A DNA stretch of 64,000 bases, taken from Saccostrea echinata (Eukaryota). Below are positions 29,527-63,880 of this stretch, one piece after another (the stretch's first letter is position 1; each line of letters opens with the position of its first letter). The stretch spans positions 9,734,001 to 9,798,000 of the forward strand of contig NW_026889757.1 of NCBI RefSeq assembly GCF_033153115.1, written 5' to 3'. Under the pieces are notes generated by a model, which had not been told where the DNA came from, did not search any database, and saw only the letters and a program-made list of their open reading frames with translations. The position numbers and the translations under genes were made by a program.

Positions 29527-29910
29527 ATGGAATATTTTGGAAAATCAAAAAATGATGATTATCGAAGATCTCATGGACCAAATCCAGAATATTTTCCCGA
29601 TAATCCAGGAAGGAGAGAACTTCAGAGTTCCAGGAAAACAACTCCCAGTAATACATTTGAAAATTTGAATGGAAACGTAGACAAAATTTCTCAACAAACA
29701 AGATCTGTCGATGGAACAGTCAATGGGAGAAATCTGCCTATTGGTAGTTCAAATGTGTTTTATGGATATGGCGGTCCCTTCCGCTTTGATGACGACACTG
29801 ATGGAAGCTCTGAGACCTATTCCATGCAGGATTTCAAAATTCAACCATGGATGGATAAAATTACGGGTGGCACATTCAAAAAGAACTACATAGATCGAGT
29901 GTCATTTCGG
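29527..29910 (+). CDS. Gene A exon 1: cytoplasmic N-terminus
   Basis: MEYFGKS...YGYGGPF...FKIQPWMDKITGGTFKKNYIDRVSFR|gtaaga. No signal peptide. Homologous to 62867-63277. Confidence 0.88.
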
Positions 29911-32900
29911 GTAAGAATATATCTTGATGTTTTTGTTTAAATGTTGATTTTTTGTAACTTTGCAAGGATAAAAACACTAATTTACTTAACTTGCATTCAG
30001 TTAAAATTCATTTTTTATGCTAATACAGGTCTAATGTTAATGCAGTGATACAGAAATAATTTGAATGAAAGTGAAAGAGAAAGTTAATATCTAATTGAGG
30101 AAGGTTACAAGTTTGAATCTGAGGGCGTGCTTGATTTAGCTAAACTTGGTGTACACCAGTGTGCACTGGTGTGAAAGGTGGGGGTGTATAATCAAGTGCA
30201 TTTTACGAGGTGTAGTGTATATGGTGTAGTATATGTTTTGCATCTCGCCCTTTTGGAGCTAAAATGTTTTGGTTTAAAGTGAAAAGAAAATTAAAATACA
30301 TTAAGAATTGACTAAATTATTTAAAATGGTTAAAAAATAATTTCAATGTCATCACTTACACATAAAAGACAACTTGAATGTGATTTCTTATCCTTTATAT
30401 TACATAAAATCATTTCTTAAATTTTCAATCGTACCATTCTCCGTCATATTGGATTCAGTGTACACCTTTCAACACATGCCCTAAATTTGGTGTGAGAAAG
30501 TTTACACCGAGTGTACACCAAAAGTCTACACCCATGCACTTGATTAAGAAAGATGTACACGGTGTAAGCGGTGTAAGTAAATCAAGCGCGCCCGTCATGA
30601 TTATAGGACTCGGGTGTAAATTAAAAAAAATATTATAGTTCTTGCATATTGCACTAGCAAGAGGGTTACCACAGTCTTCCGAGAAACCTTTAGGAATTCA
30701 ACCGAAGTCAATTTTGAATCAGAACCAGAGGTATTTTTGCCGTTTGTTCTAATAATACCTCCTAGTTCATTGGATTTTTCTAAGAAACCTTAGAATACCT
30801 GGAGTATCTCCGAAAGATAAGTCGCGTGAGGTATTTACGCCTACCTGAGAAGTTGTTTAAATAAGTCTCTAACAATATTTTTTCTCCAACAATAAAGCTA
30901 AATTTAACATTAATCTTGTGATCCAATGAATTTGAATAGTTTTTTCATAATTGTTTTACTGGAAAGAACATTCATTTAAATGCTAGAATGATACGAATAA
31001 AACAAAATATTTTCACAAAAAATTGCATTGAAGCAAACATTTTGAAAAGTGTATTACTAAATTCCTAAAATTCTAGTCGGTGAACTTAATTATCAAATCT
31101 TGAAATCTTATAATATTTCAAAGGAAAGCAGGAGTTACTTGTAGTTCCTTTGATTTTTCAAACAAGAAGATACGGATGGTTGTATGCACAGATATACACG
31201 ATATAGGTCAGACAGTAAATTGTTAGTTACTTCAAATTTTACGAGAGAATGATATGCAGAGAAAATCAATGCTGTCATTCTCAAATTAAAATTTATTTAA
31301 ATAAAAGATAACACCAAACAAAGGTATTTAATGTTGATAACATACCCGTTTGATTAGTTTACCTAATATTCCCCTAGGTAGCATCTCTGGGTTTATATTG
31401 AAGCATATTTAATATATTTGGAATGAATAATTGTGAAAATGAGAAGAAACTTGGCAATGCTATTTTTGCAGCATTTTACGGAATATCTATACACATATCT
31501 AGCAGTGGTTTTGTCTGCTATCTAATTTCAAAACCTTAAATTTTTAATATGTCAATCTGTCTGATATATAACTACAAAATATTTGATCAATAGTTTTATT
31601 TTGCCATGTCATATTACCAGGTGGACTGTCACTTTGAGTGAGTTAATTATTTAGTGTTTATTTAAAAATTTATTCTTTAGCACTATTTATAAAACTGACT
31701 CATGACGTATGTTGCCCACATTTATCAGTAATAATGTCTTTAAATATGATTTCTTTTTAACTTTCGGGGATTTGGAACCTGGCACTGTCCCTGATACTGC
31801 CCAACCCATTGAAATATAAAGGACTCCAATTGTCATTACCACCCTTCACTGTAAACTAAAAAACGCATAAACGGTCTGTGACAATATATTTGATAGTATT
31901 GTAGAAATGTTTTCGTTTTGGAATACTGTTGATTGACCCTTACATGTATTTCATTCCTTTTAAGGTTTCAATATAGAAGTATTTCCAAAAGTAACGATAA
32001 CAAATAAATTTTAACAATAATTTTACATGTTATTTAGAAATTATAATTATTATACTTTAATCTAAATCCTTCAGTGGAACTTATAAAACTGTTAAAAAAT
32101 GTTTATATCCAAAGGGTTGAAATCAAAATCTTTCATTCTTTTTGTATCATGCTCCAAAAATCGTGAAATTCAGCAAGTAATGTATTGAAAAGTCTTATTT
32201 GTATTTCTCTTTACTAAATTCAGTTTTTAAATTTGAATAAAATTTTCTTAAATAATGTCTAGTTTGAGAAATTAATTTTAACATAATATATTTATAATAA
32301 GGTTACTGAATAAAGGTACATTCACCAGGATCAACTACAAACCCTACAAGGGATTTGATATATACCATCAAAACCACATTCTCTTTTAATTCTTGTGAAA
32401 ATGAGGTATTTCATTTTAGAACATAATACTAGTATGCAAAGTCACAGCTCCACAACGGTGAAGTGGCGTTTTGAATCATAGTGATCTCATAAGAATATTT
32501 ACAAGGTGTACATTCAATATTTGAAGACCACGGATAGGCTCTTTAATTTCATAAACTCTGAAAGCTAATAAGATATTACGTGAACATTAAATAAAAATTA
32601 CCATGATAGCAATTTAAATCTTAAATAGGAAAGAAAAAATGAGGAAAGAAACATGTTGAAGACAGAACGAAAGGAGGGATTGTTATTTTCTCCAAACCGT
32701 AAATTTTCAAAGCGGAGTTCTTTGTTTTTAAATTCTATTAATTTTGAACACTATCTCATATTGAATGATTACGATGTGTGTGTGTGTGAGGGTGTGTGTG
32801 TGTGTGTGTGCCTTTAATTTTTCAATATTATATATTAGAAAACAAATCTACATGTTGTAATTTACAGTTGTCCCCGACCCCTCAATAATAACATCTACTT

Positions 32901-35900
32901 GATGATCTTCTAATGGGCCTGCACGAAAATAAATTCTAAATGAGAAGATAAACTTTATCTTTCATAGTACTGTCAATTAGTGTTTTTTAATCTTATTTAT
33001 TGAACAAATGTAAAATGTATAATAGTTCATTGTAGTTAATTGCTGCAATATATGTCATTCCTTTAAAGCATTAATTTTTCATATACCATTATCATTTACC
33101 ATTACAATTATTGTAAATGAACATGAAAATGTTTCTGATTGTGATGTCAAATTGAACAGTCAAATATATCATATAAAAAAGAATAATATTGATATTTAAG
33201 CCCTCACTCCATCATAACCCCCAAAGTAGGATGGACGATATTCGGCAGTTTCGAAGCAAGGAAAGTCCAAGTGAAACTGATTCTAAGGGAAGTAAATCGA
33301 GAACTATTGTGACCATTTTGAGCATAATTTCGGGGATCATATTAATCGGATGCATAGCAGGAACACTTGCATATTTTCTGTCACAAAAAGGTATTCATTC
33401 AATGTTCAGTTCCAAATTTGTATTTTTCTTTATACAAATTATAAAAAGGAATGTTCCATTTAATAAATTTTTGACTGAAAATAACAATTATACATGTTTG
33501 TATGTAAATAACCTTCAGTGGACATATCAAAACATTGTTTTGTATACTTTAACATAAATTATTTTTATTTAATTGAAGAAAGTGGAGATACCTCAATAAA
33601 ATATTGTAAGTATAATTTTTTTAATGAATTTTTTTTAATGTATTCTCAAATTAAGCAATAATAATTCTATGTAAATGTACAAGCATTTTGTAAATATATA
33701 AGAGCTGACAGCGATGTTACTTGTTTAACAGATGTAGCAACCGGTGAGCTCAGTTTGAATGAAATCTTCTATGAAGAACTGTCGAATTCATCTTCACAAG
33801 AATTCAAGAATTTGAGCTCCAAATTCTGTGGCGCAGTACGTATATCAAATATTCTCTTTTTCCACCACACCTGAACACTCCAATTATAAATATTTGTATG
33901 AATTATGATAAGCGGTATGTTGATCCATTGGTAAAAGCTAGATTGAGAGAATTTTTGTTCTTATTTCTTTTTTAACAGGCACGCAGTACAGTCATTCTAC
34001 AAAAACATGACCAATTAAGAATTTTTTATGTCGCTTACAAATTTACCGTTGTAATATCTTAACTATAAATTTAAAGATCTATTTCAACTCTAAGACTTAA
34101 CATACACACATGGTTTTATAAATTCTTACCGATATATATGCAGTTCAAGTTTTGATATGAACATAATGTAAAGTTGAAAAACGTATTCCACTGCAAATCT
34201 TAATGTCGCTTCATTTATTTACAAATTTCAAGATGAAATTTTCAGCCGTTCCGAATAGCGTTCCGAATGGTTTGCAATGAATGTTTAAAAAAAGTTTTTT
34301 ATTCTATACAAAAAGAAATCATGCAAACTAAAAAATCGATTTACTTCCGTAACGATTTTGTTTTAAATTTCAAACACAGAATGAAGGTTTAAAAAAGAAC
34401 TGAAACATATCTGAAAGTGACCACGGAATCTAATATCATCGATTCTAATTGCGAGTCAGCTTTTTTTTTAGACAATTACATTTTCGACATAACAAAATTA
34501 ATTAGACAAAAACAGTTGTCTCTCTTAAAAAAATTAACTTCCGTAACGGTAATTCAGGAAAGTTTTAGCATTAAAAGTATAAAAAAAAAAATTTTTTTTT
34601 TGGGAGCGAAATGCTTCACACTTACGTTTTATATCCAGAAGCAAACTATTTCATCTATTGTCGAGAATTTTAACTATTATTGCTGGGAATTAACTTCCAT
34701 AACGATTAACTTCCGTAACGATATTCCCCGAAATTTTAACTTAATTTCGGATTACTGCGAGACTTCATGAATCATACTTAAGCGTTCTCTACTAAACATC
34801 AGAAACGAAATATTGGTCAAATTCAGCTTTCATTATTTAAAAAATAATTAGACTTGATCAGCATTAACTTCCGTAACATTACATTAAAATCAATGGAATA
34901 TTGAAATTGTTAAAAATATATTGAAGTTGATGAAAAAGTTAGCGATACCAGATTTGTGGACAATTCTTTTTTTTTTCAAGTTCACTGATATGTCCTTTAG
35001 TGAATTATGATGTTCATTTTGCTATTTGAAACAATTATTTTTTTCATGTTTTATACCCCCAAATTGGTCCATTTATCGTAGAACGACTGAGTATCGTTTT
35101 TGAAAAAAAAGGGAGGCAGAAAAAATATTTTACTATTTGACAACTTACCTGGAAAAGACTTTGAAAAGCAAAAACAAAAAAGTCCAGACTCGAAAATCCT
35201 ACTTCATGTTTTAAATTAACTACGATGTAACAGTAATTTTTTCTCTCTCCATTTATTCATTATTATTGCAAATCACACTGGATATATATACACGAACAAG
35301 AAATTTAGAACCAAAATTCAATCCGTAGGTATTATTTGTTTTAAATGTTATACAGTTTAATAATTATACCTGTTCAAGGTATGATATGAATAAATATGTG
35401 TGACATTGTATTCAGATATTAAGCACCCTGCATGATGCTGTAGGGTTAACTTATATACTGTTATAGAGAGAGCTTGGTCAGAGCCCCATCCCTGGTAGCT
35501 GTTTTATATATCACTTTTAATGTTATAGGTCTGGGAAATGTTTGTTACTGACACGTTCGGATTAGAAATTCGTGTTTCAAGTCTTCTTAACTTTTCTTGT
35601 CGACATTAATAATTTTTCTAAAGATTACAGAAGCATTGCAAAACTCCACAGAAAACGGGGATAAATACAGACTATGTGAAGTTAGAGATTTCAGGTTAGA
35701 ATCTTTTACATTTCCAAAAATCTTAAGTTCAAGATAAAAGACAATTAGAATTCTCCTAGCAGAGCCATTGTGATTTTTAGTGGGATATTGCTTTATAAAT
35801 ATGTTAAATTTATGAAATATTGCCACAAATGTACGATTATAATTATGGCTCCGATTAAATGCTACTTCCACAGAAACGGGAGCATAATAGTTCGATTCAA

Positions 35901-38900
35901 AGTGTATTACGTTTACACGGCCACTGTCACTATCACCAATGAGACGGTTGAGAAGGATCTGAATAACTCTTTAACATCCAAAGATGCCAATCTCGCACAG
36001 CTTTCAACTTTAGTTATTATAAAAGTGACTTTGAAAATCACAGTCGAAGTGGAGACTTTCCGAAAAGAAAACGATCCTGTTGCAACCAATTCATTACCTT
36101 CTACAACTCCATCCCCAACAACAAAAGCAACTACTATACCGTCAACAGAAAGCACAGGAAGCATATTTTCTTCAGAACCCTCAACTGATGCTACAACAGG
36201 AACAAATATAACAAGAGTAACCACTACAACAACACCGACCACAACAACACCGGCCACAACAACAATACCGATCAGTACAATAACATCGACAACTTCAACA
36301 CCAACCACAACAACAACATCGACCGGTACAACATTAACCACTTTAACAACACCTTCCACCATTACAACACAAATAACTACAAAATCGACACATACAACAA
36401 CACAAACCACTACAACAACAGCAACGGCAGCTACAACACCGTCCACTACAACAACACCGTCCACTACAACAACAACGCCGTCCACTACAGCAACACCGGC
36501 CACTACAACAACACCGACCGCTTCAGCAACTCAATTGACCACAACAACAGCAGCTACCACCACCACAACACCGACCAGTTCAACAATGCCCACCACTACA
36601 ACAACATCTACTACTACATCACCACCCTCTTCAATGATAACGACCAATACAACAACACAGATCACTACAACACTGACTACTACTACAACACCGACCTCTA
36701 CAACAAGACCAACCACTTCTACAACACCGATCACTACGACAACAGCAGCATATATAACAACACCAATGACTGCAACAACAGAGAACACAAACAGTAGTAA
36801 ACTACCGAGGACGACGGAAACATTGGACACCACAACCGAAGGCACAAAATTGAACATTACAACAACAACAATGACAAACGAAAACACATCTGACAGTGAA
36901 ACGCAAACGTCTTCGTCAAACACTGCGATGTCAACTGAAAGAATGACACTAACTACAACTACAGATAGTACAACACTGGTAACCACTGAAACAGAAATCA
37001 TGACAGAAAAAACAATACCGGTGACAGCTAAAACAGAAAGGACGACAGAAAGTTCAATACCGGCAACACTAAACTCAACTGAGAGTATAAAGCCAACGAC
37101 TACAACAGTAGAAGATATCATGACTTCCACCGAAGGAACAACGCTATCGATGACAATCACAGCAGAAAGAAAAATAGATACGGCATCACCAGACGAGACT
37201 TCAAAGCCGACGACTACAACAGAAACAAAAAGTACAACAGACAGTACAACACCATTGACTTCTTTGGCATCATCAACCGACAGTACAATAACACAGACTT
37301 CAATAGCAACAGTAAGCACCGTCTCTACGGAGCCATCAACGAAAAGTACAACATCAGAATCGACATCAAAAATTGAAAGCTCAACATCTACAGAAATGTC
37401 AACCAACAGTACAAAACTAACAACGCCAACAACAGAGATCATTACATCTAAAGTACCAACAACCAATAATACAGATCAATCGACTTCAATAACAACTGAT
37501 AGCATAACATCTTTTGCATCACCTAGTGCTACATCAAAAATAAACCAAACAACTTCAGAAAGCACAACCGAAAGCACTACAGAAAATATGTCACAAATAT
37601 CTACAACTGTGTCAGCAGATAGCACAACTCGCGTTATAACACCAACAATGGAGACGACTTCTAGGACACAGGAATCAACGCAATGTAACGATTGTGTCAC
37701 AGATTCTACAGTAGACACAACAGCTTCATCAGACTTTACAGTTCAAAGTACACTTGAAACAACTGCTGCTGTAGTCATGGAATATACAGCAGGTTTGTTT
37801 TCATTGATTGGTATAAAGGTCACTTAAATTATACTGTTTTCTCTAAAAGGCAATTTTTAAAAGGAATCTTCTTATGTGTTTATCTTGTTAAATTCATACT
37901 TTACTATTCATGATTCTTACGTTTGTAGTGCCGTTATTTTGTTAATCGCCATAGATATTCATAATCAAGGTAACCCCTGATAATTACTGTACAATTTGTT
38001 GATTCCATGAGATAATAATTTTTATATGCACCAGCTCTTGTGTGGTAATATTTACTCTGCGTCAATCTTACATCCTAATAATATAGTAACCTATAGTTAT
38101 GATTTAAATTCTTCTGTCACATGTGGTCCATTTTTAATAACTTTAATTTTCGAAGAACTTACATCTTTGTCCTCCATAACTGTTCAACACAAAAGATAAA
38201 CAAAACAAACCATTTAATACATAATGTAAATTAAAACTTAAACTTTCAACAATTCTTGAAAGGCATGCGACAAATGATTAAATAGGACTTTTTGTTTTGA
38301 ATATAATTTATTATAATGTTTTTTCTTTGTTATCGTCTCAGACGTCAGAGTCCCGAGGATCACTGCAATCGTCGGGGAAACTACTACAGCACAAGGATGT
38401 ATAGTCATCCCACACGGCGAGTGGCTGCATGTAGATCTATCAATCGATTATAACAGTTCATCACACGTCATTGCAAAGTTGGATCACAACAAAATATTTC
38501 AAAAACCGACTTCTGTTGACAGATTTAACGGTAGCATTGACATGAATGGTGATGATATTGTTGTTACATTAACGGTTGATTTAACATCACCAAAATCAGA
38601 CTTTTGCACATGGGACGGCCGATACATCGTCACATGCTCCGTGATTATGAATGATACAATGCAAACCAGACAAACTAATGGGAGTCAGATTTCAATTACA
38701 GGTAATAACTTCTTTTAAGTGGGAAGGGATATGCATTACGATATCGCTAACTATAACAAAGCAGACTGTGGGAAGTTTTCTACCGAGAGATGATGACTGA
38801 AATATTTTGGGCCAAAAGTAGACCAATTACGTCAATATAACCAGACTAGTTCATATTAATTCTCAAAAGTTTGAATCTTTTATATACGGTATAGCGGTAT

Positions 38901-62866: not shown

Positions 62867-63277
62867 ATGGAATCTTTAGGTAAGTCGGGAAAAGTCGATT
62901 TTCAATCTTTTCGTCACACGAATACAGAAGATTCCGTCGGTAGGTCAAGGATATATGAATATCGAAGTTCTCGTCGGACACCTACGGATTCCTTTGGTAA
63001 TTCAGCAGGGAACGGATTTCGGGATTCCTCACAAAGTAGACCAGTGCATTCATTTGAAGGACCCTCCAATAACAGTGGAACCAATGTAAAGCCTCCTCGG
63101 AGTAGTGTTTACTATGGATATGGTGGTCCTTTTTCTTTAGATGACGATTTTGACAGAAGGTCGGATAGTACACAGATGTCGTCTGATTCTATTAGAAATT
63201 TTAAAATCCAACCTTGGATGACAAAAATTACTGGGGGAACATTCAAGAGGGACTACATTGACCGTATTTCATTACGG
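62867..63277 (+). CDS. Gene B (paralog of gene A) exon 1: cytoplasmic N-terminus
   Basis: MESLGKS...YGYGGPF...FKIQPWMTKITGGTFKRDYIDRISLR|gtaaga. Same intron position and phase as gene A. Confidence 0.88.
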
Positions 63278-63681
63278 GTAAGAATAAAAGAATCCATTCG
63301 TTTTTATGATTATGCTCATTTTGATACCTTAATGGTCAATTTCAAACTACACAACCAAAGCATAACATGTTGTCGCATTTACAAACGCGTCTCAATTATT
63401 CCGCTCGTTAAACCATTTTGTTTTCAACTGGTGAAATATGGAAAGTATTTGACATTAAAGCAAGTCCAAAAATTTTTTTAATAGAGAGGGTCGAAAAAAC
63501 CTTTTCCAATAAACAATAATACAATTAACTGATGTGGTTCCTCTCTAATTCCGTCACCATACTTTTGAGTGTTTCGTCTAGGAAAAAAATTATGACGTTT
63601 TTCTTCATATTATGTTGACATCTTTTCATCATTGAAATCAAAACCTCCTTGCTCTATAAATGGATTTTCTTTAATTTTTAG

Positions 63682-63880
63682 CCAACACTACAGCATGACA
63701 CCACAATACTCTGGCAAGACACTCGACAGCTTACAGAAGCAGATGACAGGGAGCCCATTAGAGGGAACTGTAATGAAGAAATTCTTGGTCGAACCACCTT
63801 AACTATCATCTTTATAATTCTTGGGGTGATTTTAGTTGGTATTGTTGGAGCTGTCATTGCATGGTTTTTAGCGATGAAGG
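63682..63880 (+). CDS. Gene B exon 2: TM signal anchor; gene continues beyond the window
   Basis: tag|PTLQH...GRTTLTIIFIILGVILVGIVGAVIAWFLAMK|gtaaaa. Phase 0-1, as in gene A exon 2. Confidence 0.85.

Follow-up and report, generated by a model that had tools for sequence, protein, structure and literature searches.

What does the run of long open frames at positions 29527-47871 (plus strand) of this DNA encode, and is it one protein or several? The frames stand amid stop-rich sequence in the window, by which we mean the whole 64,000-nucleotide stretch of the Saccostrea echinata genome that was analysed (C8:9734001-9798000 of a 923-Mb genome; GC content about 31%). An earlier annotation made from the letters alone, referred to below as the original prediction, had described one spliced gene, probably from a mollusc, for a membrane-tethered protein that joins SEA, mucin, immunoglobulin (Ig) and chitin-binding domains. 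Our best explanation is that a single gene is predicted to encode a type II (N-in, C-out) membrane glycoprotein of 2243 amino acids, a member of a bivalve protein family and a probable tether to chitin. We hold this account to be rather probable, a judgement that applies jointly to gene, topology, family and chitin-tether mechanism.

Exon borders were derived from a splice-site scan combined with a reading of the border sequence, and the exons were analysed singly. The model has 20 predicted exons, bounded throughout by AG acceptors and GT donors, with compatible phases and no internal stops; the split codons were checked one by one, and each encodes an amino acid, none a stop. Summing the exon lengths gives a predicted coding sequence of 6732 nt (2243 amino acids plus the stop), which runs from the ATG at 29527 to the TGA at 47869-47871. 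The exons, and the assembly gap that lies among them, are as follows.

29527..29910, plus strand: exon 1, start ATG and cytoplasmic tail of 128 amino acids; open frame, GT donor in phase 0
33201..33390, plus strand: exon 2, juxtamembrane segment and transmembrane (TM) helix; acceptor in phase 0, donor in phase 1
33732..33835, plus strand: exon 3, first part of SEA; basis, Pfam SEA and oyster alignment
35624..35694, plus strand: exon 4, middle of SEA; AG/GT borders, phase 0 in and phase 2 out
35874..37792, plus strand: exon 5, end of SEA with GSIIV and the 566-amino-acid stalk; donor in phase 1
38342..38701, plus strand: Ig1, class a, V-like; phase 1-1
39397..39717, plus strand: Ig2, class b; Pfam Ig_2
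39900..40229, plus strand: Ig3, class c, V-set; Pfam V-set
40445..40858, plus strand: Ig4, class d; structure model, no Pfam match
40990..41187, plus strand: CBM1, divergent CBM14-like module with eight Cys; profile comparisons
41365..41406, plus strand: linker exon 1, Thr-rich, 14 codons (42 nt); AG/GT borders, phase 1-1
41455..41593, no strand: assembly gap, in the intron between linker exon 1 and Ig5
41836..42174, plus strand: Ig5, class a; phase 1-1, in the class a alignment
42907..43233, plus strand: Ig6, class b; acceptor placed by border reading
43469..43795, plus strand: Ig7, class c, V-set; Pfam V-set
44144..44506, plus strand: Ig8, class d; aligned with Ig4 and Ig10
45665..45862, plus strand: CBM2, divergent CBM14-like module with eight Cys; CBM_14 match of an orthologue at the same position
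46054..46101, plus strand: linker exon 2, Ser/Thr-rich, 16 codons; AG/GT borders, phase 1-1
46407..46712, plus strand: Ig9, class a; weak Pfam ig match, class a alignment
46805..47152, plus strand: Ig10, class d; aligned with Ig4 and Ig8
47729..47871, plus strand: CBM3, canonical CBM14/Peritrophin-A module with six Cys, followed by the TGA

The domain order is cytoplasmic tail, type II TM segment, SEA, a Thr/Ser/Pro stalk, two blocks of four Ig domains each followed by a CBM14 module, and a last block of two Ig domains and a CBM14 module. From Ig1 through CBM3 there are 15 successive phase-1 exons, each carrying one domain or a short Thr/Ser linker, and such a one-domain-per-exon series is classic for extracellular proteins built by domain shuffling. 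Because 16 domain-sized open frames of 100-140 codons form one collinear, phase-compatible series at a GC content of about 31%, a chance origin is impossible. All the elements of the single spliced gene that the original prediction listed were found in place, and its exon model is refined in that the SEA domain lies on three exons and that Thr/Ser linker exons follow CBM1 and CBM2. Two exons have a second in-phase acceptor: one at 33705 would add nine amino acids of oyster-like sequence to SEA exon 3, and one at 44126 (compared with 44144) would add six amino acids to the Ig8 exon.

Relatives of the predicted protein were found by way of its tail. A HMMER search with a tail profile returned only 9 short clusters among 1.84 billion representatives; on look-up, one of them includes UniProt A0A8W8IX23 (P0011 in our alignments; Magallana gigas, 2193 amino acids, "Ig-like domain-containing protein") and a second is a 380-amino-acid SEA protein of Magallana gigas. 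Aligned with A0A8W8IX23, the exons of the window gene all find a match in the same order, at 31-59% identity and for 19 of 19 alignable exon pieces. A search with the Ig/CBM region of that protein led to RefSeq models from C. gigas (LOC105324798), C. angulata and Ostrea edulis that are 1968-3270 amino acids long. Four of the oyster models (P0060-P0062 and P0064) are collinear with the window exons, and P0063 and P0065 are without a few terminal exons. The per-domain identity of the window gene to the oyster members is 28-71%, and the orthologues carry the same Pfam set (SEA, Ig families and CBM_14). They also share the full order of tail motif, TM, SEA, stalk, Ig classes a-b-c-d, CBM, linker, a second such module, and finally Ig a-d and CBM, and differ in the number of Ig and mucin repeats: A0A8W8IX23 has an extra Ig1-Ig2 pair, and an isoform X7 reaches 3270 amino acids.

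By sequence comparison, then, the window gene is a member of a bivalve family with the plan tail-TM-SEA-mucin-(Ig-CBM14)n, present in oysters only as unnamed automatic models. Their names include "Ig-like domain-containing", "mucin-22-like" (Ostrea edulis) and "serine-rich adhesin for platelets-like" (C. angulata). The guess that the host was a mollusc proved correct, the closest relatives being oyster proteins at roughly 30-60% identity. The original prediction had also proposed that no characterised protein combines these elements. This is borne out as far as the literature goes: a literature search found no paper describing such an architecture, no characterised protein with the SEA-mucin-Ig-CBM14 combination, and no mention of C. 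gigas LOC105324043 or LOC105324798. The novelty of the layout itself was overstated, however, because it is already present in RefSeq and UniProt automatic models of three oyster species and at five or more loci in the present genome; the architecture is uncharacterised yet not unique. A mantle-biased "serine-rich adhesin for platelets" gene has been reported in C. gigas (PMC13664851, 2026); it is no more than a lead and cannot be attributed to the window family, because that automatic name is borne by many genes.

The oyster alignments bear directly on whether two neighbouring genes, a short TM-SEA-mucin gene and then a secreted Ig-CBM14 gene, were wrongly merged in our model. Such a merger is conceivable in that another lineage has the tail-TM-SEA cassette with a different, Ig-free ectodomain (P0004, 380 amino acids), but we regard it as barely credible. 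No stop interrupts the mucin exon ahead of its phase-1 donor at 37792, Ig1 starts in phase 1 with neither a Met nor a signal peptide, the two parts are joined in the independent gene models of three oyster species, and an unlinked locus, complete with a TM exon of its own, repeats the order.

The same alignments bear on the assembly gap, which begins 48 nt past the donor of linker exon 1 (41406, exiting in phase 1) and leaves another 242 nt up to the acceptor of Ig5 (41836, requiring phase 1). In P0011, linker exon 1 aligns at residues 1352-1363 and Ig5 from residue 1366. Since the orthologue is contiguous across this point and the flanks are in frame, no coding exon is expected inside the gap, and the loss of an exon there was rejected.

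The N-terminal exons indicate how the single predicted protein would sit in the membrane. Exon 1 aligns with the N-terminus of P0011, and its tail has a conserved C-terminal motif, WMDKITGGTFK..YIDR.SFR; the exon is 46% identical to the tail exon (62867-63277) of a tandem neighbour, paralogue B, and a three-way alignment of tails has 29 invariant columns. Exon 2 aligns with P0011 residues 170-240. The protein has a single TM segment at about residues 160-185 (Kyte-Doolittle 19-residue mean 2.56), with Lys and Arg concentrated on its N-terminal side. No hydrophobic N-terminal signal was found, exon 1 being hydrophilic (Kyte-Doolittle 19-residue maximum 0.02). Sequons for N-glycosylation are unevenly placed, with 0 in residues 1-191 and 54 C-terminal of the TM segment. 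A lone TM segment, the lack of a signal peptide, the basic N-terminal side and the split of the sequons therefore indicate a membrane protein in type II (N-in) orientation.

Outside the membrane the chain continues into the SEA domain, which is spread over three exons (33732-33835, 35624-35694 and 35874 onwards). Exon 3 shares 59-71% identity with the SEA start of oyster proteins, exon 4 shares 54-62% with oyster SEA residues (for example P0011 285-308), and the SEA part of exon 5 shares 46-54% with oyster proteins. The three pieces align contiguously with oyster regions that score 28.3, 31.3, 36.4 and 38.2 bits against Pfam SEA, for which the cut-off is 26.4 bits. It is established that the SEA domains of MUC1 and of type II serine proteases, matriptase among them, cleave themselves at G|S[VI]VV and that the two parts then re-associate non-covalently. 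The motif of the window protein reads F-R-N-G-S-I-I-V, which fits this pattern; GSIIV (35874-35890) lies entirely within exon 5, and the intron splits only the preceding Arg codon. By analogy with the established cases, the window protein would also be expected to cleave itself. The 566-amino-acid stalk that follows is 42% Thr, 15% Ser and 6% Pro, so that Ser, Thr and Pro make up 63% of it, and it could be densely O-glycosylated.

Grouped by how closely they resemble one another, the ten Ig exons form four classes, a (Ig1, Ig5, Ig9), b (Ig2, Ig6), c (Ig3, Ig7) and d (Ig4, Ig8, Ig10), each member of the last directly preceding a CBM. The class a profile matches the V domain of CADM1 (E 1e-4) and, compared with class c by hhalign, gives a probability of 91.5%; Ig9 has a weak match to Pfam ig (14 bits), and a fragment search with Ig1 found no match. 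Ig2 scores 18.7 bits against Pfam Ig_2, and the orthologous oyster position scores 31.1 bits (cut-off 27). Ig2 also matches the Ig6 position of P0011 (residues 1484-1565, E 5e-11), which links Ig2 with Ig6. Against Pfam V-set, Ig3 and Ig7 score 25.5 and 22.6 bits, both under the cut-off of 26. The class c profile matches pIgR and antibody V domains (E 2e-8), and at the Ig7 position the oyster orthologue scores 49.7 bits to I-set, 48.8 to Ig_3 and 29.5 to V-set.

Class d, Ig4 included, had no match to Pfam. An alignment of 16 class d sequences yielded an AlphaFold model with a pLDDT of 85, and the alignment of Ig4, Ig8 and Ig10 has invariant Cys, Gly, Leu, Cys, Phe and Cys columns. In a VIA-align comparison the class d model reached a Z of 10.3 to Ig domain 2 of CD22, with 154 chains at a Z of at least 8, and every top-ranked match listed has an Ig fold; Ig4 by Foldseek alone gave an E of 3e-3. 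Ig10 matches six places in the genome. Together, the profile comparisons and the structure model support an Ig fold for all ten exons and all four classes. Each of the ten exons (38342-47152) contains exactly three Cys. Classes a and c have an extra Cys a few residues N-terminal of the [DE]-x-G-x-Y motif, and some copies of class a have an extra Cys in place of the usual F-strand Cys.

Among the chitin-binding candidates, CBM3 scores 44.4 bits against Pfam CBM_14 (PF01607; E 1.8e-11, gathering cut-off 22.1 bits) in the six-Cys register. A joint profile of CBM1 and CBM2 has as its sole PDB match Avr4 (6bn0), a CBM14 lectin, at E 0.08, and reaches 86.8% against the CBM3 class by hhalign. In the C. 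angulata orthologue the best CBM_14 stretch falls at the CBM2 position (residues 2098-2151, 24.5 bits). A low-confidence model of CBM1 gave, as the top row in Foldseek, the chitin-binding domain of Blo t 12, with an E of 2.7 that is not significant. These comparisons lend moderate support to the view that CBM1 and CBM2 are divergent CBM14-like modules. We infer that the CBM modules of the window protein would bind chitin.

From these parts we propose a sheddable tether to a chitin matrix, or a sensor of one, as the probable role of the protein; binding of the head to chitin, together with force-sensitive release at the SEA domain, is the most economical mechanism. The SEA domain would cut itself at G|SIIV during folding, and the stub of tail and TM segment would remain non-covalently bound to the stalk and head after the cleavage. 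The stiff mucin stalk would lift the head about 100 nm or more off the apical surface, where the CBM14 modules would bind chitin fibrils, whether in the shell or periostracum matrix, the gastric shield, or the lining of gut or gill, and the Ig domains would supply additional binding surfaces. When sheared or loaded, the SEA joint would come apart, and either the head would be shed into the matrix or the strain would be reported by way of the tail motif. Suitable chitin is present in these animals: bivalves incorporate it in the shell matrix (PMC5379566), and their stomach has a gastric shield of chitinous material on its wall (PMC4457423). Gene structure, topology signals, domain identities, conservation and multi-copy state are shown by the sequence, whereas SEA cleavage, chitin binding, the tissue of expression and signalling through the cytoplasmic motif are the parts of the proposal that we infer. 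An anchoring or surveying role at a chitinous matrix, as suggested by the original prediction, is a reasonable candidate.

Several observations weigh against the tether reading. The tail motif has neither a Pfam family match nor an ESM Atlas cluster. The window exons by themselves give a sub-threshold Pfam SEA score (15.1 bits, on exon 3), the oyster gene models are automatic predictions, and CBM1 and CBM2, with eight Cys each, fall below every Pfam threshold in the window gene. The structure model of CBM1 is unreliable (pLDDT 57), and CBM1 and CBM2 may not bind chitin. The expectation that SEA, Ig and CBM_14 folds would all be recovered was borne out in part: it holds for the Ig domains of all classes and for CBM3, but SEA passes in the orthologues only, and CBM1 and CBM2 miss Pfam.

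If the Cys-rich modules have lost chitin binding, the protein could be a general apical adhesion or lubrication mucin, in which the Ig domains make cell-cell or cell-matrix protein contacts and CBM1 and CBM2 (perhaps CBM3 too) serve as spacers or protein-binding knots. The eight rather than six Cys of CBM1 and CBM2, their failure to reach any Pfam threshold in the window gene and the poor fold prediction for CBM1 would suit such a mucin. However, CBM3 is a clear CBM14 module at 44.4 bits, the comparisons made with CBM1 and CBM2 point only to CBM14 proteins, Avr4 and Blo t 12, aromatic residues are retained around the Cys-x5-Cys core, and a class d Ig domain is followed by a CBM in every paralogue and orthologue. 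We consider the adhesion mucin highly unlikely.

Known proteins share parts of the proposed tether. The transmembrane mucins MUC1, MUC3/12/13/17 and MUC16 resemble the window protein in having a membrane-proximal SEA domain with a G|S[VI]VV-type motif and a long Pro/Thr/Ser stalk. A non-covalent, sheddable heterodimer is expected of these SEA mucins. These mucins, however, are type I proteins that begin with a signal peptide, have their tail at the C-terminus and carry the mucin domain as their distal end, whereas the window protein is predicted to be type II and has folded Ig and CBM14 modules at its distal end. Enteropeptidase, matriptase and HAT share with it the N-terminal tail, the signal-anchor TM segment and the membrane-adjacent SEA domain. 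No trypsin-like domain was found by Pfam in any window exon, and the open reading frame ends at 47871 right after CBM3; a type II transmembrane serine protease that bears its protease was therefore rejected. The original prediction had been right on this point, since no exon has a Pfam match to any protease. The peritrophic-matrix mucins and peritrophins of insects, like the window protein, combine CBM14 and mucin domains in a chitin-rich matrix, and an oyster shell-matrix protein has a chitin-binding domain (CBD), Ig-like domains and LamG domains (PMC5379566). Unlike the window protein, both the peritrophins and this shell protein are secreted, and they are without the TM anchor, the SEA domain and the repeated Ig-CBM module.

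The layout of the window gene is found at five or more loci in the genome, including one tandem neighbour, the start of which falls within the window.

62867..63879, plus strand: start of tandem paralogue B; tail exon 62867-63277, TM exon about 63658-63879

Paralogue B extends past the window (C8:9796867-9812200, on the same strand as the window gene) in the order tail, TM, SEA, mucin, Ig1-4, CBM, Ig5, Ig9, Ig10, CBM. Its stalk is shorter (a 368-amino-acid exon), the Ig6-Ig7-Ig8-CBM2 block is missing, and identity to the window gene is 31-57% per exon. On the minus strand of C1:52810001-52910000 there are at least three paralogues with TM, SEA, mucin, Ig and CBM exons of their own, arranged as TM, SEA, two mucin exons, Ig1, Ig2, Ig7, Ig8, CBM, Ig9, Ig10, CBM; their tails differ, with no detectable match to the tail motif of exon 1. 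In two of the C1 copies, separated by about 56 kb, the Ig1 and Ig7 exons encode the same peptides, indicating a recent segmental duplication.

Other genes share only the membrane-proximal parts. A third gene with the tail motif and the TM exon lies at C8:5077795-5080965 (minus strand); its oyster orthologue, A0A8W8IRX1 (380 amino acids), has the tail, TM segment and SEA domain with no Ig or CBM, and the cassette is therefore used with other ectodomains as well. About 20 kb past the window end, at about C8:9817402-9822671 (minus strand), is a gene with a TM segment, a SEA domain (NGSIIVEF) and a Ser/Thr-rich mucin region. Type II SEA mucins appear to be clustered in the region. Upstream of the window gene, a 207-amino-acid open frame at 6521-7141 (plus strand) with a reverse-transcriptase-type motif (..RYIDDIL..) is probably a retrotransposon remnant.

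The remaining comparison is with the VCBPs, secreted proteins that, like the window protein, pair V-type Ig domains with a C-terminal CBM14 module. In Ciona, VCBP-C binds both chitin of the gut and bacteria (PMC4757023, PMC2632668). The original prediction had called the protein "VCBP-like", and the term is apt for the domain types and for little else. VCBPs are small and secreted, whereas the window protein is predicted to be anchored by a TM segment, its first exon being hydrophilic and its only hydrophobic segment internal. They have exactly two V domains, where the window protein has ten Ig domains of four classes, of which only a and c are V-like. They have one CBD, where the window protein has a clear C-terminal CBM14 module and two divergent CBM14-like modules internally. 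No J-like motif is visible in the window protein. Compared by architecture rather than by sequence, it is not a VCBP, and the likeness appears to be confined to shared domain types.

A functional rather than a familial likeness is a separate matter. The protein could be an immune mediator of mucosal surfaces, functionally analogous to the VCBPs: its Ig domains would bind microbes, its CBM14 modules would hold it to chitin-containing mucus of gut or gill, and dissociation at the SEA domain would free a soluble opsonin. This reading, which overlaps with the tether and differs in having microbe recognition at its centre, we consider unlikely. Its appeal is that the V-type Ig classes a and c together with CBM14 are the VCBP domain types (PMC2632668, PMC4757023), and that this is a multi-copy family with a number of Ig modules that varies among paralogues and oyster isoforms, as is common in invertebrate immune genes. 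But the likeness to VCBPs seen here is one of domain types, no J-like motif is visible, and the identity between the window gene and paralogue B is fairly even (31-57%), with no obvious hypervariable domain. With 56% identity Ig4, the neighbour of CBM1, is one of the best conserved exons, and this suits a structural role over an arms race.

A bolder version of the immune reading would make the family the lophotrochozoan counterpart of the VCBPs, a sheddable Ig and chitin-binding mediator, launched from the membrane, that manages microbes on the chitin-containing mucosal or shell-forming surfaces of bivalves. We regard this as quite unlikely. If it were true, the pairing of Ig and CBM14 for immunity at chitin barriers would have arisen more than once or would predate the chordates, and the SEA joint would be a release switch.

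Proteins with Ig and CBM14 domains are usually presented as a speciality of protochordates, the VCBPs, and SEA mucins are usually type I and end in the stalk itself. The window gene and its relatives point to a molluscan fusion of both designs, a type II, probably self-cleaving SEA-mucin tether with repeated Ig-CBM14 heads, and the design is conserved between Saccostrea echinata and three oysters. Provided that its heads bind chitin, the family offers a candidate for the physical link from epithelial cells to the chitin scaffolds of bivalves, for example the shell matrix, the gastric shield or the supports of the gill. The alternative role would be that of a mucosal immune factor in the style of the VCBPs, and either role, in animals of commercial importance, would be biologically new. 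With RefSeq identifiers already assigned, the oyster orthologues make up a concrete, testable set of genes.

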